From Basidiobolus meristosporus CBS 931.73 (Eukaryota; Fungi; Basidiobolomycota), in the NCBI GenBank assembly GCA_002104905.1, contig MCFE01000009.1, positions 201,036 through 265,035 of the forward strand: a stretch of DNA of 64,000 nucleotides, read 5' to 3'. Below the pieces are notes generated by a model. The model was not told the DNA's origin, did not search any database, and was given only the letters and a program-made list of their open reading frames with translations. Within the stretch, counting starts at the first letter, position 1, and every line of letters begins with the position of its first letter. Of the stretch, positions 27,770-64,000 are shown piece after piece. The position numbers were made by a program, and so were the translations under genes.

Positions 27770-28740
27770 AGGTACCCAAAACATGCACATGTAATAGTTT
27801 TTCCAAAATCCCCAAAGCTTTGCAAACATGTTTTTAGATCTCTTCAAACGTACTTTATGTACTTTTTGCCAAGACCTTGGAGAAGTGCAAATACCACTTT
27901 CACACTGAGTAGATCATCAAGTGAAAACCGTTGTAAATTTCGTAATTTCACCCTACTTAGTCACTTGGATCTTTGTCTACAAATCTTAGTGAGTTCTGAC
28001 CAAATCCCGTGTTGGGATTTACTTTGAATATTTTCACCAAAATATCAGGTACCCAGAACATGAAATTTTGTTAAGTTGTCCAAGAGTATAAATACTACTT
28101 TTACATTCAATAAATCATCAAGTGAAAACCACATAGTCTACTTGTTCTCCCAATCACTTCCAATATCTCCAAAACTCTTACAACAAAAATCATATAGTCT
28201 ACTAGCTCTCTTAATCCCCATCAATATATCCAAAACTCTCACAGCAGATGACATAAGCTATTGAATACTGTTGACTTAGAAAACTTGAAAGCAAAATAAT
28301 GCCTTTAATCAAATGGGTAATAAAAAATAGCAGCTAGAATGTGTTGACCAACAGTCAGCTTGGTGCAATCAAGATTTGGGTTGTATCTGTTGTAAAAATT
28401 CGGAATTCCACCTAAATATTCACCTAACTGAGTCCCTTAGATCATTACCTTCAAATCCTAGAGAATACTGACCAAATTCCTTGTCGGGATTTACTTAGAA
28501 TATTTACCCAGAACATGAAAATTAGATAAGTTGTCCAAACAGCCCCAAACTTTGCACACATGTTCTTGGGACCTTCCTTAACCTATTATATGTGTTTGTT
28601 ATGCCAAGACTATGTAAAAGTACAAATACTACTTTTACATTCAATAAATCATTAAGTGAAAACCACATAATCTACTTGTTCTCCCAAATCACTTCCAATA
28701 TCTCCAAGACTCTTACAGCAGTATCTGACCAGAATAACTT
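27770..28740 (+). repeat. AT-rich repeat family, about three diverged tandem modules; reverse-strand copies at ~40040-40150 and ~49420-49770
   Basis: Shared words AAATACTACTTTTACATTCAATAAATCAT.AAGTGAAAACC, CCCAAACTTTGCACACATGTT and CTAGAGAATACTGACCAAATTCC occur in 27770-28740 and reverse-complemented at 49420-49770 and 40040-40150. Confidence 0.75.
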
Positions 28741-39361: not shown

Positions 39362-41889
39362 AGTGCCCAGCTGAGAAACTTCCATTTGTGTATATAACTT
39401 AGAGTGAAAGTTATTCTTTATAGATCCATGTTTGTTAATAAATCCAAATTTCATCGAATAGAATCTCAGATACTCCATTAGCATGAGCTCGCGTTGGACG
39501 CGGATCAGTAAATCATCCTCCAGCGTCACTTGATATTAGGATCGAAGAATACTGAATCCTGCTGAATGGTCATGTATTACTGCAACGTGAGAGATTTGCT
39601 GCTTGGTATTTTATAACCTACAAATGAATACAAAGCTTGTAGATGATCACATTCAGCCCTATTCAAGTGGCGTATTGCTAAAGTAGACATTGGCGTCTTG
39701 TACATGCATGTGAGGTAAGCTGAAAGCTTGGTATTGGTGACAAGATCCAAGCTTATCACATAAATTGTCCAAGGAAATACTAGGCTGAAGCCGTAATATG
39801 ATAATGACTGCTTATGTTGTATCTGTTAATGTAGAGGACATCTAGCTCTATCTGTGGAAGATGCTTCACAAGAGGAGCATAACAAGGGGTTGATCCATTC
39901 ATCTTAAGCTTGAGGTTATTAGGTATATTACAGGGAAAATTGCACATACATGCATTTTTAGCATACTATAATATGACCAAGCCATATACAGGGAAAGCTG
40001 AGATTCAAAGCTCTGTAAATAAAGCGGATAGTTAGAATTGTGAGGGAGTCGGAGGTATTAGCAGTGATTGATGGTGGTTGGGAGAAAAAGCAGATAATTT
40101 GATTTTCACTCAATGATTTATTGAATGTAAATGTGGTATTTATACTCTTACATTATCTTGATAAAGAGCAAGCACAATGTATTAGACAACGTCTCAAAAA
40201 TATGTAGTCTTTTTCGCTAGACCCTTGGGTAGATAGGGGCTAAACCAAAAGCAAACTTAGGGGAGTGCCACAGCTACGAATCCACTGTTAACACCAAGAT
40301 ATGAGAAAACCCGCCGCATACTTTGAGATATACCAGGCCCAGCTGGAACAAATCATCGTCGTCGTTAAATGATCACTGATTTGTTGGTGGTCAGCAAAAA
40401 TTATTCTGACTAGATAAGCCATACCAAGCGGAGATGGAATCTTTGGAAACCAGTAACGTATATATGGATATATGAGGGAATCGCCGTCACAAAGGATCTC
40501 GTTGGATCCACGTCTAGCTTTCGTTCTTGTTTCGGATACTCATCCGACTCAGCCGATAGTCCATCTTAAGAAACCGAAACGCTACACCCCGGGGGTACGA
40601 TTGGAGCGCAGGAGGCGGTAGCGAGAAATATACAAACAGCAGGTGGTCACCATTGCTAAGGCATAAGCGTCCCCACTCTCCAAAAACTTCTCCTGGAAGC
40701 TGTATCCAAAGTCTGCCCTGCTCGGTATCTGACTCACTTCGGTAGGACTCCAAAAGTTCGAAGTCTGCCCCATATCCGTCTCGCTTTGATGAACTCTGCT
40801 CCACGACGTGGTCCCTGCGAGTGCACCTTAGAGATCTTCCTTCAGGTTCTTATTGTAAGGAACTTGATTCTGTTGTTAGGAATGCTCCTGTATGTTTCGG
40901 TGCAAAGACATGAATAAATGGGTTTCTCGGTGAAAGATAATTTTCTTTGGCATTACAGGTGCAACGAAGGTTTAATCCTGGTTTATCCCAGTGTTTCGTT
41001 TAGTCTAACGGATAATGTTCTCTATCCATCTCGCAATGATGCTTCCACCAGATATCTTTTATTTGGAACTTGGCTGATGGTTTGTTCACTGGGCACACTC
41101 GGCATCCGTAGTCGAGGGTTGTAACTGCCCACTCCTCATAATACTCTGCTAACTTCCATCAGCAACTGCTACTCAGTTGGGAATCCCTACGATGAACCAG
41201 TTGTAGCATGCACTTTGACACATCGGTGACTTCTATCTGTATCCGATCTATGCTGTGCTACCCGTGTAGAAACTCTCTTCAGTAGGCTACAAACAACCCA
41301 AGTCACTGGTGGGGGATGCATCTTATTTGTTGGGTTGTATATATATGGCTTCTCTTGCTTCTATTTGGCAAAAATCGAACCCAATTATATTATCCGCATC
41401 AAGACAGCCTAGACCTGCTAAACTCCCCACCGATAGAAACCAAGTTGGAAATGGGTGATACAAACTTTGCAACACAGCAAGGCAGCATATACCTGCTGAA
41501 CTCCCCACCGATGGAAGCCAGATTGGAAATGGTGGACTCCACATAAGGACTTTTTATTTCCAAATGGGGCCATTTTCAAGCAGATATAATACAATCAGTT
41601 ACTCTGTCGGGCTATTGCTTGCCGTCGGGTGTATATGTACCCGGCATTGGTTCCCGCTGTATATAGCGTTCATTTTCGTACGGGCTTGGATTATAAGATG
41701 GAAATGAGCTATGTTTCAAGATTACAATACATAGCACGGCTTTGAATTACAACCACTGTGCACCGCACCAGTATCTTTCCCTTATAATGTGCAAAGCGGT
41801 TGTTACGGTAGGGGGTATTGTTCAATATACTACGTGTTAAATAGGTCTAATATTTCACGAATCATTGGCCAAGAGAAGATTAAGCAGGT

Positions 41890-48180: not shown

Positions 48181-50121
48181 AGTGCCCAGCTGAGAAACTT
48201 CCATATGTGTATATAACTTAGAGTGAAAGTTATTCTTTATAGATCCATGTTTGTTAATAAATCCAAATTTCATCGAATAGAATCTCAGATACTCCATTGG
48301 CACGAGCTCATGTTGGACGCGGATCAGAAATTCATCCTCCAGCATCACTTGATATTAGGGTCAAATAATTTTGAATTCGGCTGAATGGCCATGTATTGCC
48401 ACAACGTGAAGATTTTACTGCTTGCTAAGTTCAGCTTGGCATTGGATGGAAAGCAACCTATCTTTTTTGTGGAAGAAACTTGGAGGTAAAACCACCAGGG
48501 GCTTGTCCAATTTGTATTTGATATATTAGTATGGGGCACAACAAGGCATGCGAATTTGGTGAAAATAGAAGTTAGTAGCATACTTGCTTGGCAAGTATTT
48601 CAATTTTGCCTAGGGGTATGTGTTTGATCAATGGAACCTGATAAAATGGGCCCCAGATATTTTGATGAAATATTCCACCAATAAGCTAGCAAACAATTGA
48701 AAAAATTACTCTCAGATTTGTGAACTATAATCCAAGTGACTTAGTCCAGTGAGTATTTTGGTGTAATTAAAAATACATGACACTCCCACAAAATCAAATA
48801 TTCCTATTAACTAGTCCTAATTGTGATCCAGATATTCAAATTTGTCTCTAGCTTATGGTTTGGTAAATATATATGCAATCATTCTATCTATGGGCCTGTA
48901 AGCTAAGTTAGCTAACCTACTCTCTATGGCTTCTTCTATGAAAGGATGACTAATATTTATATGCTTAGTTCTAGCACAAAACATTGGATATCTATTTAAT
49001 TGTATAAATCCTGAACATCTTAAAATGATTTGGCAGGGGCTACTTGTTGTAAGCCTAAATCTTTGAAAATCATTCTTTTATAGCCTCATAGGCTGCCGTA
49101 TATTCTGGCTTGGTGGTGGAAAGTGCTATTATTGGTTGATATCTCAAAATCCATGAAATTGCTCCTTTACAGTAAAGAAAGCTTGTTGCATCCAAGAGAA
49201 AAGTGCAATAAACTCCTGAATGAGTTAACTGAACCTAAGTGACAACTAAGTGCAGAATCTTTGAGTTGACAAGAGTAACAGAAATATTAGCAGAGACGTT
49301 CTGGTCAAATGTTGGTCTTTATATGGCTGGGTTAGACTACAAAGGCAACAGGGTTGGTTTGTTATGCAGGCTAGGCTTGGCGTTCTTAGGAGTACTAGAT
49401 ATGCTAGACTTGGGTGGAAACTAGAATGTGTTGTAAGAGTGTTGGAGATATTGAAAGTGGTTGGGAGAACAAGTAGATTATGTGGTTTTCACTTAATGAT
49501 TTCTTGAATGTAAAAGTAGTATTTATACTTTTACCTGGTCTTGGCATTACAAACACATAGAATACATTAAGGAAGGTCCCGAGAACATGTGTGCAAAGTT
49601 TGGGGCTGTTTGGGCAACTTTGAGAATTTTCATGTTCTGGGTACCTGGTATTTTGGTAAAAATATTCTAAGTAAATGCCGCCAAGGAATTTGGTCAGTAT
49701 TCTCTAGGATATGAAGATAATGATTTAAGTGACCAACTTAGGTGAATATTTAGGTGGAAATACAAATTTTTATAAGAGAATGGAATTGTTGAATTTGTAA
49801 TTTTGCTGAGGCACAATCTTAATTTCATTGAGGCACACACTGAGCCAAAGGTTCAGTAAACTTTATATATATTTCTCTGATTAAGTCAAATTAGTAGGCA
49901 CCAAGAGACCAGACAAATTGAAATCTGATGGGGTGTTTATTGGTGGATAGGATAAATGAGAAATTGTATCATCAATCAGCTGATGTCTTGGCAACTGCTA
50001 AGTGGTTGGATAGATCTTAGCTGACCAATCACTTGGAAAGGCTTAGCAGATCAGTCAAGGATATATTGACCACATGAAAATTGATTAGTTGTGACAGCTA
50101 AAAATAGAATCTAAGTGATAA

Positions 50122-50208
50122 GGGGGGAAGACAGTCACCAACAGGTGAAATCTTTATTTCAGTTGAAACAAAGAAGCCAGCGCTACTGTTGTAGCTTTGA
50201 TACAAGAG
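50122..50208 (-). mobile_element. 87-bp 3'-terminal fragment of the LINE at 50731-52861
   Basis: Near-identical to 50731-50817, then switches to GGTTAGGG. Confidence 0.85.
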
Positions 50209-50730
50209 GGTTAGGGGGGGGAGGAAAGTCACCAAGTGGTGAAATCTTTATTTACTTATGACAGGTATCTAAAGAAGCCAAGTTAATCTGAAGTAATTCC
50301 TAGAAAGCTAGGTCTGAGAGATATCTTCCTGGTAAGCCAGGTTTGAGAGTTGAGAAGCTGAGTGGTACTATATTTCCTAGTTAGCTAGGTCTGAGAGAGG
50401 TTTCCTGGAAAGCCAGGCCTGAGAAGTGAGAATCTGAATATATCTGAGCTAAGTTATACTGGTTTGCGGTAGCTGAATTGTGGCCGGAATGGCCAGTAGA
50501 CTAGGGGAACTGAGATGAATTTCTGGGCAATCACTGGCCAAATTTACTAGGCAAATCTGACCAATTAGCATTTCAAGGATTTCAGCCAATCAGAGCCTTT
50601 ACTTTGCCCAATGGTTGATCAAGCCATCTCCCAATGAGCACACATCAATTTATTAATCAAATTTTGCTGGATCCAGGATTTGAACCCACAACCATGGGTA
50701 TGGAAGGGTTAGGGATATCCACAAGGCTTA
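50209..50730 (-). mobile_element. SINE-like element with tRNA-Gly(TCC)-derived head and LINE-type 3' tail
   Basis: Minus strand from 50730 reads TAAGCCTTGTGG...CTTCCAT...GGGTTCAAATCC. G18G19, U33-TCC-A37 and G53-T54-T55-C56-A58-C61 all fall in tRNA register. Internal ~80-bp duplication (~50305-50440). The 3' end shares AATAAAGATTTCACC..GGTGAC..CCCCCCCTAA with the LINE. Confidence 0.65.
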
Positions 50731-52861
50731 GGGGGGGAGACAGTCACCAACAGGTGAAATCTTTATTTCAGTTGAAACAAAGAAGCCAGCGCTACTGTTG
50801 TAGCTTTGATACAAGAGTGTGTAGCTGAGGGGAATTTGTAGGTAAGTTAATAAGAAGTGATGATAGTTCTTCAGTGCTCAAGACATTGTTCAGTGGGAAG
50901 GGGGGTAGCAAGAGAGGTAAGAATGACTTGTGAACAACATTAATGAGGGGAATGTGATAAGGATTGATATTCATCATAAAGGGAGTGTGCTGCTGCAGAT
51001 ATTGCTGCCAAAGGTCTGTCAAGTACTTCAGGTAGGCCAGCTTGGGTTTTTCTGACTGCAGAATAAATTCAGCAAACTTCTTGACTTCAGGATCTCCAAG
51101 TATAGCTCTCCAGCAGGAGCCAGGTGTTGTGTGGTGTGTTCCCTTCCAGGCCTTAATCAGTGGGTTGTTGCAGTTGTGAAGTCTGAGGTATAATCTGGTT
51201 CTAAGGTAGAGAAGTCTGATCTTATAGGGCATGAACCCAAAAGCACCAAGAATAGCATGTCTGTAGGGGCATTCAGGCAAATGAGGCACCAAGGAGGTAA
51301 TGCACCATTCTGCAAACTTGTCAAGCTTAGTGCAGTCTCTAGAAGTAAGAGAGAGAAGTGGTAAGCCAAATTCCAGGACAGGGAAGACAAACTGCTTGAG
51401 TAGAAGAAGGCAGCTGGGAGCTGAAGTTGTAGGAGGAGTAACAGCCAGTAGCTTGTGGAGTGCCTGTCTTGCTAGGATAATTCTCTTCTTCAGGTGTGCT
51501 CCAGAGTCTAGTCCAGTAGGAAGAAAAGGAAAGCCAAGATATGTAGGAGAAACCTGAGCAGGTAGAGTGGAGTTCTCCAAGTTGATGGGAGAGCCCAAAG
51601 GTACTGTCTTTGCAATGGAAAGCTGAAGATTATTCTTCTGCAGATACTGGTGGATGGTCTGGGAGTCTTGTTGCACATTGGAGGAGGATATTCTGATGTC
51701 ATCAGCAAAGAGAGTAACCAGGCAGTCAGCTGAGAGTCTTGGGAAATCATTCAGGAAAATGGCAAACAGTATAGGGCCAAGCACAGAGCCTTGAACCACT
51801 CCATTAGGAACTGAGAACACAGCTGATTGCTCACTTGGGTGCAGAATTCTTGCTTGTGGATCCAGAAACAGAGACCTGACAAGGAGGGTGAGAGAGGTAC
51901 TGGAGAAGCATTGCAACTTGGACCAAAGCAGATTTCCGTCAACTGAATCAAAGGCCTTAGTAATATCAAACAGAACAGAGGGATACTTGCACTGGAGAGA
52001 GTGATCTTGGCTAAGTATGACTGCATATTCCAAGGAGAGGCCAGGAACAAAGCCAAACTGTGCAGGATGAGACTTGAGGGAGTCAGAGTAGAGCTCCTGA
52101 GCAAGCAGAAGCTCAAACACCTTTCTGCAGGTGGGCAGCAGAGATATTGGCCTGTAGGAGCTAGGATCCAGGTGCTTTCCTTTACCCTTGTACAGTGGCA
52201 GAACATTTGCAAAGGACCATTCCTCAGGAGTAGAAAGCTGGGCTGAGCATTGCTGAAACAGTGGAAGCAGAAGTGCAGACATGGCCTTGGTACTAGTCTT
52301 CAGAAGCTCATAGGAGATTGTGTCCACACCTGGAGCAGTAGAGTTGGGAAGCCTCTTGAGCACATTATGGATTCTCCCTTGATCAAGTGCAAGTGGGATG
52401 GGCAGAGTCTTGAAGTCAGGATGAAAGTCAGGAGTTGAGTACTGCTTTGTAGAGAAGAAGATGTTAGCCAGCTGTTCTGTTGAAGGTAACTTCCTGGAAG
52501 AGGGCCTCATTGCCCTGTAGAGTCTTGATACTGTTCTTGTTATAGAGTTGGAAGATTGCAGAGGCAAAGAACTCATAATATGATCCCAGAGCTGAGTATG
52601 AAGAGTGTGGTGAATTGCCTTGGAGTGGTGTATGGCTGTCAGGAGAAGTTTCTCTGTTTTTGGGTTAGGGAAACTCAGGTAGCTTTGTTGCAGGGCTGAA
52701 ACAATGGATTCCCATTTTCTTGAGGTAACAGCAGTAGTCTTGCATGGCAGTGAGAGGGAGGCAGACACCAGAATCAGATGCTTCACAAAGAGCCAGGCAT
52801 AGTTGAGATCATCTGGCAGAGAAAGTAGCAAACTGGCAAGCTTCAAGTAGTTCCCAAAGTC
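50731..52861 (-). mobile_element. Non-LTR retrotransposon (LINE-type RT), lacking the endonuclease region; ORF 50792-52846
   Basis: APGVDTI, YRPISLLP, QFGF, FDITKAFDSVD, GVVQGSVLGPILF, LFADD, YLGF and thumb FPVLEFG. The N-terminus resembles the post-APE linker (DDLNYAW..). It is bounded 5' by (CCCTAA)2; no CCHC or PD-(D/E)xK seen. Confidence 0.92.
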
Positions 52862-52873
52862 TTAGGGTTAGGG
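52862..52873 (+). repeat. (TTAGGG)2 telomere-like seed; further seeds at 50208-50216, 50706-50714, 50728-50733, 55897-55902, 56337-56342
   Basis: Read directly. All are G-rich on the plus strand, and all but 50706-50714 sit at element junctions. Confidence 0.8.
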
Positions 52874-52915
52874 TGTAGGTGTTATAGTAAGGGCTAGGAA
52901 ATGGTTAGAAGAGCA

Positions 52916-52982
52916 GGGGGTCTGGGGGACGCAGTCCCCTAGAGAATAAAAAAGCAGGGGGTTTGGGGGATGCAATCCCCCA
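52916..52982 (+). other. Pair of GCA-triloop hairpins with four G5 tracts (also 56386-56452)
   Basis: GGGGAC-GCA-GTCCCC and TGGGGGAT-GCA-ATCCCCCA, each preceded by AGCAGGGGGT(C/T)T. Confidence 0.8.
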
Positions 52983-53511
52983 TACTGCTCCCATACTCTT
53001 TAAATTCACGTTGGGTTACTTTTCTCTCATTCTTGGTTCTGGTCCCTTAGGGTTAGAATTCTTCCTCCTAACCCTTATCACCCTAACCATAAATATTTTT
53101 ACCCTACAATTGGCACATTGTCTGCTCATATAGTGGGCATGTCTGGGCCAATATTTGTCTCCCTATACTGTCCATATACTCTGTATAAGTCTTGATGACT
53201 ATTTAATTAATAAATTGTTACTTTTAATGTATATCTAATAATTAATGGGATTCATCCCAATCTGGCCACAATCCCATATTTTGATAAGCTTCAGGCACCA
53301 TAAATTGCGCGGCCCTAATATGATAAAAAAATTCATGGCCAATACAAATTTTCTGTAACCCAATTGCTTTTACCAAATATAAAGTGTATCCCAAAGTTCA
53401 ATATATATTATGGCTATAATAGAAACTTTATTTGACACCATCGCAACTACTACTTATGTTCTATGCGCACATGTATCCCGCGGGAATTGTAAAACTTAGC
53501 CACGTGGTACA

Positions 53512-54212
53512 AAAGTGCTTTTATTTTTCATCATGATAGTTTTACATGAGTTCCTAACGCACTTTGAAAGTACGCAGTAGCCATACCCCAACAGGTTTTA
53601 AGGATGTCCACTAGCTACATCTACTTGTGTCTAGCAGGGAGCCATCAATCATCAGCCGCGCAATACTGAAATGCTTTTATTTTTCATCATGCTAGTTTTG
53701 TATGAATCCCTAACGCACTTTCATAGTGCGCGGTAACCATACCCCAACAGGTTTTAAGGATACCCACTTGCTACGTTTACTTGTGTCTAGCGGGAGTCAT
53801 CAATCATCAGCTGTGCGGTAATAAAGTGCTTTTATTTTTCATCATGATAGTTTTACATGAGTCCCTAACGCACTTTTATAGTGCACGGTAACCATACCCC
53901 AACAGGTTTTAAGGATACCCACTTGCTACGTTTACTTGTGTCTAGCGGGAGTTATCAATCATCAGCTGCGCGGTAATAAAGTGCTTTTATTTTTCATCAT
54001 GATAGTTTTACATGAGTCCTTAACGCACTTTCATAGTGCGCGGTAACCATACCCCAACAGGTTTTAAGGATACCCACTTGCTACATTTACTTGTGTCTAG
54101 CAGGAGTCATCAATCATCAGCTGCGCGGTAATGAAGTGCTTTTATTTTTCATCATGATAGTTTTACATGAGTCCCTAACGCACTTTTATAGTGTGCAGTA
54201 ACCATACCCCCA
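53512..54212. repeat. Tandem array, ~155-bp unit, ~4.5 copies
   Basis: Unit starts at 53512, ~53668, 53823, 53978 and 54133 (AAAGTGCTTTTATTTTTCATCATG...). Confidence 0.92.
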
Positions 54213-54669
54213 GAAAGTAGTGTGGATGCTTACTTTAAACGCTCACTTGTGTATTGTACGGACTATCAACAAACAGCCACGTGGGAATGGAACATCATTG
54301 AAAAGCATTGCTTTGTTGTTAGCAAGTATTGATGCGCAAAGAGTGGTACTATGTGAATTATTGAGTAACTATTTACTCTAGTTGGTTCCAAGATATTCCT
54401 AGACAATATGCTCAAAATCAATATTAGCATCAATAGCTTGCTCTTTGATCACTAAACCACCGCACCCAATATGCGGTGGCCTTGGTTTTGTCTAGCCGTC
54501 AAGGAATGAAACCAGAGTACAGTCACAAGAGAGGCAAAAGTGAAATGTGATGAAGTAAGTGTATATGAAAGTAATATAAATCTACAGGACAGAAGAGAAC
54601 AACTAGTAGTTAAACAGCACTCACTGACACTCCACCAAGTAGAGCACCAACACGGACAATAAACAAGTC

Positions 54670-55131
54670 ATGAGGGGAAAGCTTAAGGACCACTACTTGG
54701 GGATCAAGACCAAAAGAGGAAGCTGCCTCTACCATAGCAGTCCTTGCGCTCCAAAGGAAGACCAAGAGTCTATTATAGACAAAGATAGTGGCGAGAAGAG
54801 CAGTACAATTACCAGTTCTGGTAGTGGTACCTTTGGAAGTCCCAAATACCTGGAGAAAACTCGGAAAAAATTGGCAGATGACTCAGTTGTTGTGAGGAGA
54901 AAACAAACCAATGCAATTGAGCAGTTCCAAAACGAACTTCAGCTTAGTTCTTCTTTGCCTCACTATAAAGTACTCCAAGTGGCTTATTTGGATTATAAGC
55001 GTATGAAGGAGAATCAGGCAGAGACTGATAAATTAAGTGATAGTCAATTGCATCACTTCTTAGATCAGGTAGAGAAACAGTCGCACAGCCAAGAGACGGA
55101 ACAAGAATTGACAATTACAGAAACCAAATAA
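54670..55131 (+). CDS. Hypothetical 153-aa protein (unit copy 1)
   Basis: ATG-initiated ORF, also open in copy 2; no recognised domain. Confidence 0.4.
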   Translation: MRGKLKDHYLGIKTKRGSCLYHSSPCAPKEDQESIIDKDSGEKSSTITSSGSGTFGSPKYLEKTRKKLADDSVVVRRKQTNAIEQFQNELQLSSSLPHYKVLQVAYLDYKRMKENQAETDKLSDSQLHHFLDQVEKQSHSQETEQELTITETK

Positions 55132-55363
55132 TTTTGCCATTGTAGTTTTGCATTTTAATAAAATAAAAGGGTGTTAATAAGAACAGAATAAAGTTAACTT
55201 ATGTGTACATCAAATGATTCAAATACTGGCTAGATGGATGTTACGTAGGAGCAAGAAGCTCAGTAACCTCAAAGGAAAGATATGATGAATGGGCCACCAA
55301 CATCATCCAAATGAGTATAAAAGTGGAGAAAGTAGACATAATCCTTCATAAAAAACAAGAAGC

Positions 55364-55900
55364 ATGGAAGCAGGCAGTAGCCGGGTAGATGCCAGGAGTG
55401 AAGGTAGAGTACAAAGAAAGCAAGGAAGGGGACAAGGATGCGGAAGAGGACGCGGAACCGGGCGCGGAAGAGGAAGAGGGCAAGGAAGTGGCCAAATCCA
55501 AGAGGAGCGTGAAGGAGGTGTTGCAGCAAACATGGATGATGCTGAGCAAGTTGCTGTAGTCACTACCAGGCGGCCGGTCAACCAAGTTTCCCAAGCATTG
55601 TCAGAGGTTCAACAAGAGCTTCCGGAATATAGGACAACATTGCACCATGAGATATTGCGACGTATGTGCCAGGAGATTAAACAGAGGAGGGGTGATATTG
55701 TAAAGCTAAATCGGGATATTGCTGGACTTCAAGCCCAGATTGATTTCAGTTTCCACCATTCTACTGAGGCATTAGTGGCACAAATGGTGGAAAAGTTTGC
55801 CTGCATCAGGGCAAGCGATGAGCAGGGTGCATCTTCCAACCCAGGTGTACTTGCAAGCAACAGTATTGGAGAGGATACTACTTCCTCCCTCAAACCTTAG
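55364..55900 (+). pseudogene. RG-rich/coiled-coil ORF truncated by the retroelement junction (copy of 58522-59307)
   Basis: Matches the 261-aa ORF up to ...TTSSL and ends at a TAG supplied by the TTAGGG junction. Confidence 0.55.
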
Positions 55901-56336
55901 GGGAGGGAAAGTCACCAAAGTAGGTGAAATCTTTATTTGATTTCAGACAAGTCCAACTACAAATAAAGAAGCCAGCTGGGAATAGAAGATTCCCAAAATA
56001 AACACTAAGTTGAATATGAATAAGTCTAAGCTAAAGTTAAGGCAGTATCCCAGAGTACACTGGAGTTCAGGTTCATGGGGGAGTGAAGTAGATAAGCTTG
56101 AGAAATATAATAATCTTTTAAGAAGTGGGTAACAGCAGGTGAAGGGGAGTTTTTGATAAGTGAAGTGAATCTTGAGATCAGAGATTCCTCTAATGAGAAG
56201 GTCTTGTAAACTGGAGAATCAGGAAACTCTTTGAAGGCATGGTCAGTAGGTTCCCAGTAAAACTGGTCAGAGACATTTTGAGAGAATTGTTTAGCAATAC
56301 TTTTGTCAAGTACTACCTCCAGAGTGTGATGGTTGA
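55897..56336 (-). mobile_element. 3' fragment of a second, divergent retroelement family member
   Basis: Same terminal motif (TTAGGGGAGGGAAAGTCACC..GGTGAAATCTTTATT..AAAGAAGCCAG). The minus strand has an ATG-less ~100-codon open frame (INHHTLEVV...WDTALTLA*) cut at CCCTAA. No CpG seen. Confidence 0.65.
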
Positions 56337-56980
56337 TTAGGGTGTAGGTGTTATAGTAAGGGCTAGGAAAAGGTTAGAAGAGCAGGGGGTCTGGGGGACG
56401 CAGTCCCCTAGAGAATAAAAAAGCAGGGGGTTTGGGGGATGCAATCCCCCATACTGCTCCCATACACTTTAAATTCCCATTGGATTACTTTTCTCTCATT
56501 CTTGGTTCTGGTCCCTTACGGTTAGAATTCCTCCTCCTAACCCTTATCACCCTAACCATATATATTTTTACCCTACAATTGGCACATTGTCTGCTCATAT
56601 GGTGGGCATGTCTGGGCCAATATTTGTCTCCCTATACTGTCCATATGCTCTGTATAAGTCTTGATGACTATTTAATTAATAAATTGTTATTTTTAATGTA
56701 TATCTAATAATTAATGGGATTCATCCCAATCTGGCCACAATCCCATATTTTGATAAGCTTCAGGCACCATAAATTGCGCGGCCCTAATATGATGAAAAAA
56801 ATCATGGCTAATACAAATTTTCTGTAACCCAATTGCTTTTACCAAATATAAAGTGTATCCCAAAGTTCAATATATATTATGGCTATAATAGAAACTTTAT
56901 TTGACACCATCGCAACTACTACTTATGTTCTATGCGCACATGTATCCCGCGGGAATTGTAAAGCTTAGCCACGTGGTACA

Positions 56981-57370
56981 AAAGTGCTTTTATTTTTCAT
57001 CATGATAGTTTTACATGAGTTCCTAACGCACTTTGAAAGTACGCAGTAACCATACCCCAACAGGTTTTAAGGATGTCCACTAGCTACGTCTACTTGTGTC
57101 TAGCGGGAGCCATCAATCATCAGCCGCGCAATACTGAAGTGCTTTTATTTTTCATCATGCTAGTTTTGTATGAATCCCTAACGCACTTTCATAGTGTGCA
57201 GTAACCATACCCCAACAGATTTTAAGGATACCCACTTGCTACATTTACTTGTGTCTAGCGGGAGTCATCAATCATCAGCCGCGCGGTAATAAAGTGCTTT
57301 TATTTTTCATCATGATAGTTTTACATGAGTCCCTAACGCACTTTTATAGTGCGCGGTAACCATACCCCCA
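56981..57370. repeat. Tandem array, ~155-bp unit, ~2.5 copies
   Basis: Unit starts at 56981, 57136 and 57291; two units fewer than the array in copy 1. Confidence 0.92.
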
Positions 57371-57827
57371 GAAAGTAGTGTGGATGCTTACTTTAAACGC
57401 TCACTTGTGTATTGTACGGACTATCAACAAACAGCCACGTGGGAATGGAACATCATAGAAAAGCATTGCTTTGTTGTTAGCAAGTATTGATGCGCAAAGA
57501 GTGGTACTATGTGAATTATTGAGTAACTATTTACTCTAGTTGGTTCCAAGATATTCCTAGACAATATGCTCAAAATCAATATTAGCATCAATAGCTTGCT
57601 CTTTGATCACTAAACCACCGCACCCAATATGCGGTGGCCTTGGTTTTGTCTAGCCGTCAAGGAATGAAACCAGAGTACAGTCACAAGAGAGGCAAAAGTG
57701 AAATGTGATGAAGTAAGTGTATATGAAAGTAATATAAATCTACAGGACAGAAGAGAACAACTAGTAGTTAAACAGCACTCACTGACACTCCACCAAGTAG
57801 AGCACCAACACGGACAATAAACAAGTC

Positions 57828-58289
57828 ATGAGGGGAAAGCTTAAGGACCGCTACTCGGGGATCAAGACCAAAAGAGGAAGCTGCCTCTACCATAGCAGTC
57901 CTCGCGCTCCAAAGGAAGACCAAGAGTCTATTATAGACAAAGATTGCGGCGAGAAGAGCAGTACAATTACCAGTTCTGGTAGTGGTACCTTTGGAAGTCC
58001 CGAATACCTGGAGAAAACTCGGAAAAAATTGGCAGATGACTCAGTTGTCCTGAGCAGAAAACGAACCAATGCGATTGAGCAGTTCCGAAACAAACTTCAG
58101 CTTAGTTCTTCTTTGCCTCACTATAAAGTACTCCAAGTGGCTTATTTGGATTATAAGCGTATGAAGGAGAATCAGGCAGAGACTGATAAATTAAGTGATA
58201 GTCAATTGCATCACTTCTTAGACCAGGTAGAGAAACAGTTGCACAGCCAAGAGACGGAACAAGAATTGACGATTACAGAAACCAAATAA
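57828..58289 (+). CDS. Hypothetical 153-aa protein (unit copy 2)
   Basis: Same length as, and similar to, 54670-55131. Confidence 0.4.
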   Translation: MRGKLKDRYSGIKTKRGSCLYHSSPRAPKEDQESIIDKDCGEKSSTITSSGSGTFGSPEYLEKTRKKLADDSVVLSRKRTNAIEQFRNKLQLSSSLPHYKVLQVAYLDYKRMKENQAETDKLSDSQLHHFLDQVEKQLHSQETEQELTITETK

Positions 58290-58521
58290 TTTTGCCAATG
58301 TAGTTTTGCATTTTAATAAAATAAAAGGGTGTTAATAAGAACAGAATAAAGTTAACTTATGTGTACATCAAATGATTCAAATACTGGCTAGATGGATGTT
58401 ACGTAGGAGCAAGAAGCTCAGTAACCTCAAAGGAAAGATACGATGAATGGGCCACCGACATCATCCAAATGAGTATAAAAGTGGAGAAAGGAGACATAAT
58501 CCTTCATAAAAAACAAGAAGC

Positions 58522-59307
58522 ATGGAAGCAGGCAGTAGCCAGGTAGATGCCAGGAGTGAAGGTAGAGTACAAAGAAAGCAAGGAAGGGGACAAGGATGCG
58601 GAAGAGGACGCGGAACCGGGCGCGGAAGAGGAAGAGGGCAAGGAAGTGGCCAAATCCAAGAGGAGCGTGAAGGAGGTGTTGCAGCAAACATGGATGATGC
58701 TGAGCAAGTTGCTGTAGTCACTACCAGGCGGCCGGTCAACCAAGTTTCCCAAGCATTGTCAGAGGTTCGACAAGAGCTTCCGGAATATAGGACAACATTG
58801 CACCATGAGATATTGCGACGTATGTGCCAGGAGATTAAACAGAGGAGGGGTGATATTGTAAAGCTAAATCGGGATATTGCTGGACTTCAAGCCCAGATTG
58901 ATTTCAGTTTCCACCATTCTACTGAGGCATTAGTGGCACAAATGGTGGAAAAGTTTGCCCGCATCAGGGCAAGCGATGAGCAGGATGCATCTTCCGACCC
59001 AGGTGTACTTGCGAGTAACAGTATTGGAGGGGATACTACTTTCTCCCTTGAACCTACCACAGGCCAAGAGACAAGAGCAGAATCCTCCACAACAATGAGA
59101 ATGGCCCCCACGCAGGTTGATATGGAAGTGTGCGAAGAAGACGTGGAGAAGCAGAGTGGGGATACTATAGGCCAACCAGAAACTGTAATGGAGGCGGAGA
59201 GACCAAGTCATATTGTCATCTTAAAAATACCACAGGTTGATTCATCGCTATCACTTCCCCCATCATCACTATCTGTGCCCCCATCACCACCGCCATCCTC
59301 TGGCTAA
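58522..59307 (+). CDS. Hypothetical 261-aa protein with RG/GR-rich tract and predicted coiled coil
   Basis: GRGQGCGRGRGTGRGRGRGQG followed by heptad-like EIKQRRGDIVKLNRDIAGLQAQI; S/P-rich tail. Confidence 0.5.
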   Translation: MEAGSSQVDARSEGRVQRKQGRGQGCGRGRGTGRGRGRGQGSGQIQEEREGGVAANMDDAEQVAVVTTRRPVNQVSQALSEVRQELPEYRTTLHHEILRRMCQEIKQRRGDIVKLNRDIAGLQAQIDFSFHHSTEALVAQMVEKFARIRASDEQDASSDPGVLASNSIGGDTTFSLEPTTGQETRAESSTTMRMAPTQVDMEVCEEDVEKQSGDTIGQPETVMEAERPSHIVILKIPQVDSSLSLPPSSLSVPPSPPPSSG

Positions 59308-59479
59308 CTTGAGTAAATAAAGAATTTCCACCATCCCAAATCAATGAATTGACAAGTAATAAGTTGAACTGATAAGATTGACAATTTACAGACTAATATA
59401 TGTAAAGTATGTAGTACTTAAGAGCTTTCAAGTTGTGGTGTATTATCAAGTATTCACCGTCACATAAATCACGCAGCAG

Positions 59480-62327
59480 TTGTTGTATCCCTATCCCAAT
59501 GGCATTAGAAGCCAGCAGTTACAAGGAGCATCGGAAAAATTTGGCGTTTACCTGGCGACGGTGGCAGGTGTAACAAAACGCAGCTATTGCTCGATGACCA
59601 TTACCCCATCTATGAGATACTTGCTATTATATGGAGGGTATTCTGTTGAGCACTTTCAAGACAGCAAAATATCCCCGCCTTATGATGAGCGTATAGCTGA
59701 AGAAACATCCGGCCGTGGAATACTCTATGAGCCCAGCTCAAAGGTTCAAATGATTCACCTTGCAGATCTACACGGTGATGAAGACATCACAGTGACAGTT
59801 CTCCCGACTCCAGACAACATATCAACTACAGAGGCAGCCAAAGGGGTGATTTTAATTGGCAACAGCTGTGCTAGTGACCACGAGAATCTCTACATATATG
59901 GTGGTTTTGAGCTGAGCCGTAGAGAATACTCAGGGCGACATGAAAGTGCCAAAAAACGGGGGAAAAAAGCGATACGAAGCAAGAGTGGGGAGACAATCAA
60001 TAGAAGACTGAGCAAGCTGGAGGTAATCACGTACAAAGATGGCAATGGATGCTCCAGAGTATTGGAGACAAGGCCATTCTTGAATAATCCGGCGAATATG
60101 CCTTCAGCAAGAGGTTGGGCAGTTCTTACGTACGCATTTGATTGCTTATTCTTGCTGGGCGGCTATCCTACACCATTGGAACCACCTTATACCCAACCAA
60201 ATGGGAGTTTTTTAAACAAGTTCTACTGTTTAAAATTGCAAACTGGTGATTGGGAAAGACGATATGTACACTCAGCAATACAGGAGCTTGGAGAAAACTT
60301 TATTGCTGTGGTAAACGAGTATAGCAACCAAATCCAATACATCAACAATGCAAATGTTACATTCACCTATGATGTCGATAATCAGATCTGGACTTACCCT
60401 CCCGATCCAAGTCAGGAAGAAATGAGTACAAAGCAGCTACTAGGGCGCATTCTTAATGAATTGGCAGCAATTTCTCAGCGGCACAAGAGGGAAGGCGAAG
60501 GAAGTGCTGAGACTGAAAATATCTTGCGGCATAGTGCCCATGGTCTTACTGTACCACTTAAGAACCATCAAGCATTTGGCGTACAATGGCTGATGTATAC
60601 AGAGGCCATCCATAAAGGAGCATTGCTTGCCAATTCCATGGGACTTGGAAAGACATTGCAGATATTAAGTCGCATATTGGAGACACCTGAGCAAAGGCCA
60701 AATCTTATTGTTGTCACGCTTGGAATACTTCTCAATTGGGTGATGGAGATAAAGACAAAAACAAGGATATCCGATGAAGAGCTTCATGTATTTCATGGAA
60801 AATTCCGAGCTATCAAGAAGTCAGATATGGAGACTAAGAGGATTGTGCTCACCACCTACCACACACTATGTGTTGAAGCAAGGAACCCTGATTTGCCTAT
60901 ATGGAATGTGAAATTTGGCCAAATAGTGGCCAATGAGGCAGATACACTTAAGAACTACGAAGGCGGTAGCTTAAACGCAGTGAGTAAAATTGATGGAGAA
61001 TCCTTAATACTTGTCACTGCCACCCCATTCCAAAATGAGATTATGGATCTTTATTCACATTTCACATTATTCAATCTATGGGAAGGTATTCCAAAGGATT
61101 TCCATCAACTCCTACTTGAGGAGGCCAATGCAAACAGGCTAGTTGAATGGGTTGTAGAAAGACTTGGCCCATTAATATTGAGACGCGTTCCAGAGTCGCA
61201 AATATTTGGAGAACACGCAGTATCCATGCCTAGTATTCAAGAGCAGATTGTCTTGTGCCAATTCTTGCCGGAGGAGCTGCAGGAGTACAAACAACTGCAG
61301 TCAAGTCTTCCAGAGGAAGTCGGTTGGATGGGTGCAAATACCTATCTGCGTCTGTACTCATGCCATCCATATATGTATACCTGGAGCAGGAAGAGGAATT
61401 GACTGAAAAAAGCGGCTGATGCTAGCATTGTCCAAGATGTCGAGATGAGTGAGGATGATTTTCTACCTGAGATTGATGAGGATCTTGAGGTGGTTGCGGT
61501 TGAGGTTGAGGAGCAGCTTCAAGAGATTAATAGCAAAGAGGTTGACAGCTCATCCAATGTTCCATCTACTTCTGCACCAACTGCCATACGCACCGAAGAC
61601 GCCCCTACAATTGCCCAAAGAGGGCTTGCGTTAGAGGACTCCAACAGGGTATTCATCCAAGATTTCCTCACTGGTGTAACCAACAACACTGTGAACGAGC
61701 ATAGTGGCAAAACTTGGAAAATCATGGAAATCCTGCTTGAAATCCAAGAGAAATAAGGAGCACGCACGTGTTATTATTTTTTCTGGGTTTAATCTGATGC
61801 TTGACATAGTGGCTTACCATTTGAGGGAGCAGAGCATTGAACATCTGAAGATTACCGGTTCCACCCCAGTTTGGATACGAAAGAGCAGTATAGATACATT
61901 TGCATTGCCAGTTCCGGAGGGCAAGATTTGTGTGTTACTGATCAACATCAAATGTGGCGCATTTGGATTAAATTTGCAGATGGCATCGGCGGTGATCATT
62001 GCCGACAATTGGTGGAATCCCTATGTAGAAATCCAAGCGAAGGCCAGAGTTTGGAGGGTGAATCAACCAAATAATGTTTCTAGTTACCAGTTAGTCATGC
62101 AAGATTCCATTGAAGCTCAGGGTGTAATTGACAGTCAAACTCGTAAGATTGGCTTATTTGGCCAGATTACGCATACGTTGGTAGATGAAGCATCCAAAGT
62201 ACCAATTTCATTACAACTTCAAGAGCAAGATGATCGGTACTTGAGCCAATTACATGAAGCGCAAGGCAGTGGATCTCTGATGCACAAAGATGAAGAGGAG
62301 GTTGATGAGACAACAGATGAGGAGTAA
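59480..62327 (+). pseudogene. Kelch-like repeat / SNF2-family helicase fusion, disrupted
   Basis: N-terminal LLLYGGY, LYIYGGF, PSARGW..LFLLGGY (Kelch-like). SNF2 motifs LKNHQAFGVQW, LANSMGLGKT, IVLTTY, VANEAD, TATPFQN, LILRR, RVIIFS, GAFGLNLQMASAVII..WWNP.VEIQAKARVWRVNQ. In-frame TGA at 61400-61402 (61445 ORF is the same frame) and a frameshift near 61750. Confidence 0.82.
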
Positions 62328-62522
62328 ATAGGGGTTGCAATGTACCAGGAATCAAGTATGCCAGACTCGAGGTAGTAGTAGCTACTATTGGTAAATAAAC
62401 AATGAGACTAATCTTTTTGCACGAGAAGGGTGGGAGAGGGAGAGGGAGAGAGAAAAGTCAGAGTGGTACAGTCTAAATAAAAAAGGGTGCAAGAGTTTTA
62501 TGGTGATGAAGATAAACATGCA

Positions 62523-63015
62523 TTTGGTGCCGCGCGGTGGTGTTGGGGATTCATCGGGCACAAATGAAAGTGCGATGCTAGAATATAGTGATGAGAATAA
62601 CCATAGGTTTGGTGCCGCGCGGTGCCAATTTGGTATTGAGATTCATCAGGCACAAATGAGAGTGCGATACTAGAATATGGTGATGAGAATAACCATAGGT
62701 TTGGTGCCGCGCGGTGCCAATTTGGTATTGAGATTCATCAGGCACAAATGAGAGTGCGATACTAGAATATGGTGATGAGAATAACCATAGGTTTGGTGCC
62801 GCGCGGTGCCAATTTGGTATTGAGATTCATCAGGCACAAATGAGAGTGCGATACTAGAATATGGTGATGAGAATAACCATAGGTTTGGTGCCGCGCGGTG
62901 CCAATTTGGTATTGAGATTCATCAGGCACAAATGAGAGTGCGATACTAGAATATGGTGATGAGAATAACCATAGGTTTGGTGCCGCGCGGTGCCAATTTG
63001 GTTTTAAGATTCATC
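62523..63015. repeat. Tandem array, 92-bp unit: one diverged, four identical and one partial copy
   Basis: TTTGGTGCCGCGCGG recurs at 62523, 62608, 62700, 62792, 62884 and 62976. Confidence 0.95.
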
Positions 63016-63352
63016 AATATGCGGTAATGAATGATTTGATATGTGCCTTCGTTGGATGGATGACATGCGTTAGTTGGTACTAAAATAGTCTACTCCAACA
63101 AAAACCGCAGGGTATGCCCCCGTGTCTGTTTCATGGGGTTCAGTAAATCACCCAGGGCTATATAAAAATGAAGACCTCTTCTGTAAGGTATTCAGACACA
63201 GACGCGAGAGTTAGTGAAGTACTTGAATCTTACTCACAATTGTAAGCAATGGACTTTCAGTTAGGCAAGAAGTCTTACCTAAGGTAAGTTGAGCTTTGAA
63301 GATTCTAGAAAGGACTTGAGCGTCTTGGTCGCTGCTAATAGCATTCAAGTAA

Positions 63353-64000
63353 GAACTGATTTGGTGGCAATTGTGCGCTAGGGTTGGAAGCAATAGCACA
63401 TCTGGGCAACATATATTCATTGAGAATAACTACTGTCAGGCTGCTAGAACTTCCTCCGGATCCCAAAGCGCTTTACACTTAGAGCAGGGCAAGAGCAGTC
63501 ACCAGCATGGACAATGCGTAAATCCCAGAAAGAGAACGCGACGTGGCAAAAAACATTCCCGAGCCAAGAAGAACAGAAGGGTAGCACTAAATGGGGAAGT
63601 ACGCATTTTAGGAATGAGGCAGGTGATGGAAACATCGGTTGCAACGCAGAAAGGGCAGCAAGAAAAGAGCACCCAACCTGGATTGAAAGGCGGTGATACT
63701 TGCAGAGTAGGCATGGTGCGTGAATATCTGGGTGAAAATCAGGATCCTGGAAATGATTTTGGCGACCTTGATGTGGGCAACCTTGATGTGGATATCATGA
63801 GTAGTGAATACAGCACAGATCGGGGATCCATTGGGGGCATATCAGAGGAGAACATTGCCCAAGCAACAATTCGAGTGGCATCAAATGGTGATCATTCAAA
63901 CGGGCTTAGTAATTGTTGCACAACCACAGGGGAAGAAAGAAGCACTGAGAAGCCACATGGCCTACCGCACACTGCACGTGGTACAAGAGGCAGAAGGGAG
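63353..64000 (+). CDS. Open frame running off the window end (unknown protein, basic NLS-like tract)
   Basis: No stop from 63353 to 64000 in this frame (...PRKRTRRGKKHSRAKKNRR...MVREYLGENQDPGNDF...). TATAAAA at ~63160 and intron-like GTAAGT..CTAATAG (~63285-63340) upstream. Confidence 0.4.

Follow-up and report, generated by a model that had tools for sequence, protein, structure and literature searches.

The stretch analysed here, referred to as the window, comprises 64,000 nucleotides of Basidiobolus meristosporus CBS 931.73 (contig MCFE01000009.1, positions 201,036 to 265,035). Its right part contains two copies of a multi-kilobase repeat, called the unit below, each of which begins with a telomeric TTAGGG hexamer. 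From left to right, the unit consists of TTAGGG, a fold-back module of about 230 bp, a 155-bp tandem array, open reading frame 1 (ORF1), ORF2, a Kelch-like/SNF2 gene, a 92-bp tandem array, and gene 4. All four genes are oriented towards the chromosome end and are antisense to the retroelements with which the unit is stacked. A preliminary description of the same DNA had already reported a TTAGGG-anchored, multi-copy SNF2 unit with genes of this orientation. The features of the unit are as follows; the source of each assignment is given in brackets.

52868-55897, plus strand: unit copy 1, cut on its distal (right) side inside ORF2 (about 97% identity to copy 2)

56337-64000, plus strand: unit copy 2, which has one TTAGGG at its start (56337-56342) and continues beyond the window end (self-BLASTN)

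52874-53100, plus strand: left-end module (repeat search, DNA folding)

53507-54210, plus strand: 155-bp tandem array with GCGCGGT motifs, 4.5 copies; in unit copy 2 at 56975-57368, 2.5 copies (Tandem Repeats Finder, TRF)

54670-55131 in copy 1 and 57828-58289 in copy 2, plus strand: ORF1, an orphan of 153 amino acids (ORF list; no Pfam family)

55364-55897, plus strand: ORF2 of copy 1, truncated after codon 178 (ORF list, self-BLASTN)

58522-59307, plus strand: ORF2, 261 amino acids (ORF list, homolog search)

59499-62327, plus strand: Kelch-like/SNF2 gene, about 943 codons as a read-through, broken (Pfam, alignment with eight paralog models, frame check)

62456-63016, plus strand: 92-bp tandem array, with a degenerate unit from 62456 that precedes 5.1 copies starting at 62548 (TRF)

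63249-64000, plus strand: gene 4, start only (exon 1 63249-63283, intron 63284-63447, exon 2 open to the window end)

Self-BLASTN aligned positions 52868-53900 with 56337-57368 at 97.5% identity, and positions 53817-55897 with 56975-59055 at 96.9%. The copies are hence collinear, and what distinguishes them is two units of the 155-bp array (4.5 versus 2.5 copies). Both start at the T of TTAGGG, which is followed by TGTAGG, and thus at exactly the same base, as had been noted before. The upstream flanks are unlike each other: copy 1 is preceded by a 5'-truncated long interspersed nuclear element (LINE) and two TTAGGG, copy 2 by a 439-bp LINE 3' fragment and one TTAGGG. At its other side, copy 1 breaks off at position 55896/55897 within ORF2, and a LINE tail starting with TTAGGGG follows directly. 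The preliminary description, according to which copy 1 is cut in the middle of an ORF by the 3' end of a retroelement, and copy 2 continues into orphan ORFs, a Kelch-SNF2 gene and a second array, was borne out by ORF, Pfam and TRF analysis (92-bp array, 5.1 copies). The proposed end at 63015 had to be given up. This position is merely the end of the 92-bp array; gene 4 begins at 63249, and copy 2 leaves the window. Since no TTAGGG occurs after position 56337 up to the window end at 64000, copy 2 comprises at least 7.66 kb, and an end at 63015 is arbitrary. If the 828-residue paralog of gene 4 is added to the part seen in the window, the unit should measure at least 9.7 kb, that is, roughly 10 kb.

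A simple local segmental duplication would produce two copies of this kind, which are 440 bp apart and about 97% identical. However, the flanks differ although both copies begin with the same base after TTAGGG, a LINE fragment lies between them, and dozens of paralogs on other scaffolds refute this explanation, which is given next to no weight. Statements on the unit throughout the genome rest on annotated proteins and scaffold lengths. ORF2 is represented by at least 26 gene models (a 20-member cluster plus six further clusters) on more than 20 scaffolds, the SNF2 gene by eight models on eight scaffolds, and gene 4 by four annotated models, two of which are cut by scaffold ends. Scans of metagenomes with the recombinase protein and with the left-end DNA of the unit gave no match. 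The preliminary description had named as a refutation the case that only the two copies of the window exist; with ORF2 and SNF2 models on many scaffolds, this case does not apply. The four genes are linked as one unit: ORF2 and the SNF2 gene have adjacent locus tags on four other scaffolds (309207/309208, 309243/309244, 300649/300650, 299722/299725), and two scaffolds, with lengths of 13,828 bp and 202,103 bp, carry both ORF2 and gene 4. The unit is a multi-scaffold repeat and not a local duplication.

The ORF2 and gene-4 products of the window itself are recorded on a scaffold of 265,035 bp in the B. meristosporus CBS 931.73 assembly. Gene 4 is annotated there as a partial protein, whose 189 residues correspond to the spliced stretch 63249-63980. 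It is therefore plausible to assume that the right end of the window lies at or very near the scaffold end. According to the best reading of these findings, the two copies in the window are separate and now defective members of a family of four-gene repeats at scaffold ends.

Of gene 4, the window contains a TATA-like box at 63161, the short first exon, a canonical intron of 164 nucleotides (GTAAGT...CTAG) and the start of exon 2. The spliced translation is identical to the annotated partial protein P0129 in 189 of 189 residues. Among 1.84 billion representative sequences, the open frame had one match, namely P0126 (94% identical). The paralogs P0128 and P0127 comprise 828 and 737 amino acids, respectively, and it is from these full-length members that the recombinase-like domain is known, which lies beyond the window. 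When residues 545-775 of P0128 were compared with the ESM Atlas on the basis of features, 17 of the 30 named matches were clusters of Phage_integrase (PF00589), with scores of 0.96-0.97 and 171 shared features. The corresponding structure search yielded PF00589/XerC clusters with template modelling (TM) scores of 0.56-0.66, normalized by the query, over about 160-180 residues; eukaryotic proteins of about 700 amino acids matched this segment as well. Inspection of P0128 by eye identified the motifs IRIS (Arg), EDKRPGG (Lys), RDLRRW (HxxR box) and NHH...QIY (His, Tyr) in the expected order, in positions that no significant profile alignment fixes. A SAM-like N-domain gave a weak match at residues 396-420, again in the expected order. 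Judged by features, predicted structure and motif order, the gene-4 family probably consists of tyrosine recombinases.

The earlier statement that no transposase is visible has to be revised accordingly. The window, and probably the scaffold too, ends inside gene 4, so that the apparent lack of a transposase is an edge effect; full-length members of the gene-4 family carry a tyrosine-recombinase-like catalytic domain. In the preliminary description, a known transposase had counted among the refuting results. The presence of this gene moves the interpretation from a passive, Y'-like repeat towards a recombinase-bearing element.

The Kelch-like/SNF2 ORF is 93% identical to the B. meristosporus CBS 931.73 protein P0001. 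Pfam assigned SNF2-rel_dom (PF00176, E = 2.5e-29) and Helicase_C (PF00271, E = 5e-15), both above the curated cut-offs, and residues 350-510, which correspond to the SNF2 N-lobe, were modelled by AlphaFold2 (AF2) with predicted local distance difference test (pLDDT) values of 80-95. The assignment of the N-lobe is solid. The Kelch label is weak: Pfam matches were below threshold (PF24681, E = 3.8e-4, 20 bits versus a cut-off of 50; Kelch_4, E = 0.005), the Kelch-like residues 1-314 were left unmodelled by AF2 (pLDDT below 40), and one paralog is labelled 'Galactose oxidase' in UniRef. The only motor domains found by Pfam were SNF2-rel_dom, ResIII and Helicase_C, and none was of the telomere-linked helicase (TLH) or Y'-Help1 type. 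The motor is thus neither a RecQ-type TLH nor Y'-Help1, in agreement with the earlier remark that it is unusual compared to known helicases of chromosome ends.

The Walker A motif is present (GLGKT). At the Walker B site, all four family sequences that cover the motif contain NEAD, compared to DEAQ in the consensus of relatives; due to this replacement, the SNF2 motor may be impaired family-wide, as far as can be judged from sequence. In the window, the gene is interrupted by a frameshift about 14 codons past the family ATG, an in-frame TGA at 61400-61402, and a further frameshift near 61750. The TGA at 61400 is also found in the paralog P0099. A 51-nucleotide in-frame intron at 61375-61425, which would remove the TGA, was considered and rejected, since it would have only weak splice signals and the same stop codon terminates the public model of another copy. 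All eight gene models are fragments of 157-634 amino acids, compared to the read-through of about 943 codons.

Neither ORF1 nor ORF2 belongs to a Pfam family, and no homolog of ORF2 was found outside B. meristosporus. The ORF2 protein consists of an RG-rich N-terminus, a helical middle part and a Ser/Pro-rich tail. A comparison of copy 1 with copy 2 yielded ratios of non-synonymous to synonymous substitution rates (dN/dS) of 0.54 for ORF1 (5 synonymous and 11 non-synonymous changes) and of 0.79 for ORF2 (11 changes). These values, which are based on few changes, indicate that the copies in the window are drifting. On another scaffold, the annotated protein P0111 fuses the N-terminal part of ORF2 to the middle of the SNF2 gene, which suggests an internal deletion variant of the unit.

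The left-end module contains degenerate telomere-like motifs in both orientations, which can pair with each other. Its DNA fold has an energy of -39.7 kcal/mol (z = -3.8), and none of 200 shuffled sequences was equally stable. A 34-nucleotide motif, composed of G-runs and a hairpin, occurs twice in the module (52906-52939 and 52947-52980), and the two hairpins differ by a compensatory pair (GAC/GTC versus GAT/ATC) that was read from the sequence. Within 52906-52980 as well as within the corresponding stretch 56374-56448 of copy 2, each 34-nucleotide motif comprises a pair of G5 runs and a hairpin whose loop is GCA; the four G5 runs of a motif pair could form a G-quadruplex.

Each of the two tandem arrays is located upstream of a transcription unit. 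Of the 27 GCGCGG hexamers in the window, 25 fall within the unit region; the majority belong to the arrays and share one orientation. Each 92-bp unit contains CCGCGCGGT, as determined by motif count. The octamer TAACCATA resembles the telomere repeat of the C strand. A single occurrence lies in the left-end module and one in each unit of both arrays (positions 53084, 53734-54199, 57047-57357 and 62598-62966), always on the plus strand. The idea that the 92-bp array is an inverted relative of the 155-bp array, such that both would form subterminal inverted arrays, was dismissed, because local alignment was no better than with shuffled sequences; the arrays have only the short motifs GCGCGGT and TAACCATA in common. 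Probably, the arrays are protein-binding or regulatory sites.

The two unit copies belong to a terminal stack that begins at position 50121. From there rightward, it consists of a LINE tail fragment, an element resembling a short interspersed nuclear element (SINE), a LINE with a reverse transcriptase (RT), unit copy 1, a LINE fragment, and unit copy 2. Each piece is joined to its left neighbour via TTAGGG and a G-run. Apart from the unit copies, the members of the stack are:

50121-50211, minus strand: 5'-truncated LINE 3' tail fragment, the most internal member (97.8% identity to 50730-50820; shared tail)

50212-50727, minus strand: SINE-like non-coding element with a LINE-type 3' tail (tail alignment; TTAGGG junctions at 50211 and 50728)

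50728-52861, minus strand: 5'-truncated LINE with a reverse transcriptase ORF at 50792-52846 (Pfam RVT_1, E = 5e-24; shared tail)

52862-52873, plus strand: two TTAGGG units between the truncated LINE and unit copy 1 (read from the sequence, motif search)

55898-56336, minus strand: 5'-truncated LINE 3' fragment of 439 bp on the broken end of copy 1 (tail alignment; 55888-55950 resembles 50719-50780)

The four retroelement tails have a strongly conserved end, which is composed of a poly(A) signal, a TCACC-loop-GGTGA stem, a C-run and TAA. TTAGGG dimers with at most one mismatch were found three times, compared to 0.24 expected occurrences. From 50211 on, the plus-strand TTAGGG at 50211, 50728, 52862/52868, 55897 and 56337 each mark an element junction; further ones, located outside junctions, are at 50709 in the head of the SINE-like element, at 52665 inside the LINE, and at 53047 inside the unit. 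The occurrence of TTAGGG on the plus strand places the chromosome end to the right. Minus-strand elements whose 3' ends point to the centromere are expected from priming by a G-rich end, that is, from an addition of the HeT-A/TART type.

In the region 49000-64000, ARAGORN detected no tRNA, so that a tRNA-derived head of the SINE-like element was not confirmed. A T-loop-like sequence, GGTTCAAATCC, is located on the minus strand of this element near position 50680. The retroelements are nearly devoid of CpG: two dinucleotides were counted in the LINE, two in the SINE-like element and none in the LINE fragment, with observed/expected ratios of 0.02, 0.09 and 0.00, respectively. The ratio is 0.48-0.56 in the adjacent unit and 0.70 in the rest of the window, and that of CpA reaches 1.53 in the LINE. 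This scarcity of CpG in the retroelements suggests selection against CpG or, alternatively, an extreme decay driven by methylation.

The stack allows one to judge whether the unit itself is a retro-copy. The RT of the neighbouring LINE could have acted in trans, if a long minus-strand transcript of the unit with the complement of TTAGGG at its end paired with the G-rich chromosome end and was reverse transcribed in the manner of the LINE and SINE tails. In line with such a process, the fixed end of the unit faces the centromere and its truncated end the telomere, as in the 5'-truncated LINE and SINE pieces; the minus strand of the unit ends in CCCTAA, and the short unit stretch GGGGACTGCGTCCCCC resembles the LINE tail GGTGACTGTCTCCCCCC. 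However, the LINE/SINE tail with its poly(A) signal, TCACC-loop-GGTGA stem, terminal C-run and TAA is missing from the unit. Moreover, the template RNA would run antisense to its four genes, one of which is interrupted by a spliceosomal intron. The observed/expected ratios of CpG (0.48-0.56 in the unit versus 0.00-0.09 in the three retroelement pieces) argue against a long shared history of the unit and the retroelements. Rfam yielded no match to a hammerhead or another structured RNA, neither for the whole window at gathering thresholds nor for 50000-64000 at E-values up to 5, and there is thus no parallel to Terminons in this respect. Owing to the missing tail and the different CpG content, copying by the RT of the neighbours is improbable. 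Of the two routes of spread that the preliminary description had offered, recombination was therefore kept as a possible one, whereas RT in trans found no support.

On the internal side of the stack, left of position 50121, the window contains ordinary genes, including a FET4-type iron permease (Pfam). Between 700 and 20500, seven tandem copies of a roughly 3.2-kb unit, with 75-100% identity, probably represent a tandem gene family. Pairs of inverted repeats with a length of 80-180 nucleotides and 80-93% identity connect the positions 27947-28687, 40058-40160 and 49429-49779; they have the appearance of a short dispersed repeat, with one copy just internal to the start of the terminal stack. 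A scan for promoters and terminators of the bacterial type is uninformative for a fungus.

What, then, is the unit? The preferred reading, to which a probability of about 0.5 is assigned, is that of a recombinase-bearing mobile element of chromosome ends, which is now decayed. Such a mobile DNA element would use its own tyrosine recombinase to link its fixed end with a TTAGGG core at the worn tip of a chromosome. Subsequently, the tip would have been eroded into copy 1 from the distal side, a LINE would have been copied onto the broken end of copy 1 and would itself have been eroded, and finally a TTAGGG seed would have been added, to which copy 2 was joined. The SNF2 motor may have aided access to telomeric chromatin or recombination there. 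The same first base behind unrelated flanks and only 6-12 bp of TTAGGG would fit site-specific joining better than general homologous recombination. A viral precedent exists for tyrosine recombinases targeting telomere repeats (PMC10871703), and for Cryptons, integration through recombination between short matching sequences has been proposed (PMC3212892).

Several points weigh against the preferred reading. The data show the left end only, whereas the far end, a second TTAGGG core, an empty site and a circular junction lie outside the view. A recombinase acting on a long telomere tract should leave proximal tracts that are variable and often long; the junctions observed consist of one and two TTAGGG units, as for an addition to a critically short end. 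Gene 4 is represented by four models and ORF2 by at least 26, and distal erosion of terminal additions fits these numbers at least equally well. The dN/dS values of ORF1 and ORF2 are 0.5-0.8 on few changes and the SNF2 gene is broken, which means that the copies in the window are not active. With respect to the recombinase, searches of the gene-4 family against Pfam and PHROGs at E-values up to 10 and with phmmer against the PDB yielded no recombinase profile match, and hhalign and hmmsearch comparisons with a small alignment of XerC, XerD, lambda Int and Cre were non-significant. The AF2 model of a gene-4 paralog has a pLDDT of 29.7 and is unusable. In P0128 the HxxR box begins with R instead of H, and P0127 contains a Q instead of the R. 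Scans of metagenomes with the recombinase protein and with the left-end DNA of the unit gave no match.

Some of these points fit a passive subtelomeric repeat of the Y'/TLH type, which would be immobile today and whose recombinase gene would be a relic of the element that landed first. Here, a critically short end with one or two TTAGGG would anneal to the TTAGGG that starts a unit elsewhere, either at another end or in an excised circle, and would copy this unit by break-induced replication. The unit is multi-copy at scaffold ends, its genes face the telomere, as in yeast Y', and the junctions of one to two TTAGGG fit priming from a critically short end. The distal cut of copy 1 and the much lower number of gene 4 compared to the proximal ORF2 fit units that end at the tip, and all genes seen in the window are decaying. 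However, a homology of 6-12 bp is far below that used in recombination of the Rad51 type. In yeast, the junction tracts of Y' are tens of base pairs or longer. Moreover, the intact recombinase ORF of 828 residues in at least one copy speaks against a merely passive repeat, and the precise first base behind unrelated flanks needs microhomology priming as an extra assumption. A passive repeat is a serious, although less favoured, rival explanation.

A more far-reaching version of the preferred reading can be put forward only tentatively. The unit might be an autonomous DNA element of a new type, about 10 kb in length, which is driven by a tyrosine recombinase, brings along an SNF2 motor of its own as well as two orphan proteins and binding-site arrays, and recognises TTAGGG. 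Together with telomere-tailed LINEs and telomerase, it might build chromosome ends and thus be a DNA-based counterpart of HeT-A/TART.

Alternatively, and as a special case of integration by a recombinase, the unit could be the remnant of an endogenous DNA virus that integrates at telomere repeats by means of a tyrosine recombinase, like the endogenous nimaviruses of crustaceans. The ESM Atlas feature clusters nearest to residues 290-737 of P0127 consist of hypothetical proteins, most of them from Preplasmiviricota; viral tyrosine recombinases specific for telomeres are documented (PMC10871703), and the unit contains orphan genes and iterated arrays. Nevertheless, the 7.7 kb seen contain no gene for a capsid, a polymerase or packaging, PHROGs yielded no match, and gene 4 contains a spliceosomal intron. 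A viral origin is therefore highly doubtful.

Chromosome ends are usually kept by telomerase, and a few lineages add retrotransposons; many fungi carry helicase-bearing end repeats, whose origin is unclear. B. meristosporus, a culturable early-diverging fungus, appears to combine TTAGGG repeats, stacks of telomere-tailed LINEs and SINEs, and a recombinase-encoding repeat of the helicase type. Should it be the recombinase that places the unit at TTAGGG, Y'- or TLH-like end repeats would have a concrete and testable origin as former mobile elements, and the small set of tyrosine-recombinase elements known from eukaryotes would gain a telomere-specific one. Otherwise, the unit still provides, as far as the literature searched shows, the first telomere-linked motor gene family of the SNF2 type; the searches yielded nothing on a comparable unit or on the chromosome ends of Basidiobolus.

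Among known systems, the TATE elements of kinetoplastids, which have a tyrosine recombinase, are linked to telomeres. TATE and VIPER are, however, retroelements with an RT, which the unit lacks: on neither strand of 52868-64000 was an RT found among the ORFs or by Pfam. In endogenous nimaviruses, a tyrosine recombinase is likewise tied to insertion in the telomere repeat of the host (PMC10871703); these are viral genomes of 200-360 kb, whereas the part of the unit seen is without viral genes. Starships are fungal elements as well, in which a tyrosine recombinase travels with other genes. The gene-4 family, however, has no match to DUF3435 (PF11917). Moreover, the captain of a Starship is the first gene at the 5' end (PMC9156397), whereas the recombinase of the unit is the last gene seen, most distal from the fixed end and pointing away from it. 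The unit measures about 10 kb instead of tens to hundreds of kb, and its host is early-diverging and not a member of Pezizomycotina. The unit is not a Starship.

With Cryptons, the unit shares a eukaryotic tyrosine recombinase gene that contains an intron, and no terminal inverted repeats are visible, where only the left end of the unit is seen; the TTAGGG at the boundary could serve as recombination core. Cryptons, however, usually comprise 3-5 kb and one gene, sometimes with an extra DNA-binding or protease domain, compared to at least 9.7 kb and four genes including an SNF2 ATPase, and the recombinase of the unit has no detectable sequence similarity to known recombinase profiles. A restriction of Cryptons to telomeres was not described in the literature searched. 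The unit is not a typical Crypton.

MoTeR, FoTeR, HeT-A/TART and the Terminons of rotifers resemble the unit in forming one-way, head-to-tail terminal stacks with a fixed proximal end at telomere units and with distal truncation. In contrast to these telomeric elements, the unit has no RT, no shared 3' tail and no hammerhead, and its genes are antisense to the telomere-primed orientation.

The TLH regions of Fusarium oxysporum, Magnaporthe oryzae (TLH1) and S. pombe (tlh1/2), and likewise yeast Y', are multi-kilobase, multi-copy blocks next to telomeres, as the unit appears to be, at which no terminal telomere tract was seen. In all of them, a motor gene of superfamily 2 is transcribed towards the chromosome end, and many copies are truncated. 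TLH proteins are defined by RecQ motifs, a TLH domain and C2H2 fingers (10.1101/2024.02.27.582403). The motor of the unit is of the SNF2 type with a Kelch-like N-terminus, lacks these three characteristics and is not Y'-Help1; in addition, the unit contains a tyrosine-recombinase-like gene, two orphan ORFs and two arrays, and its junctions comprise only one to two repeats. The TLH regions of Fusarium are interleaved with FoTeR/telomere-specific retrotransposons and with single interstitial telomere repeats (PMC12857005). This likeness, which also speaks for a passive repeat, makes them the closest known arrangement to the terminal stack of B. meristosporus.

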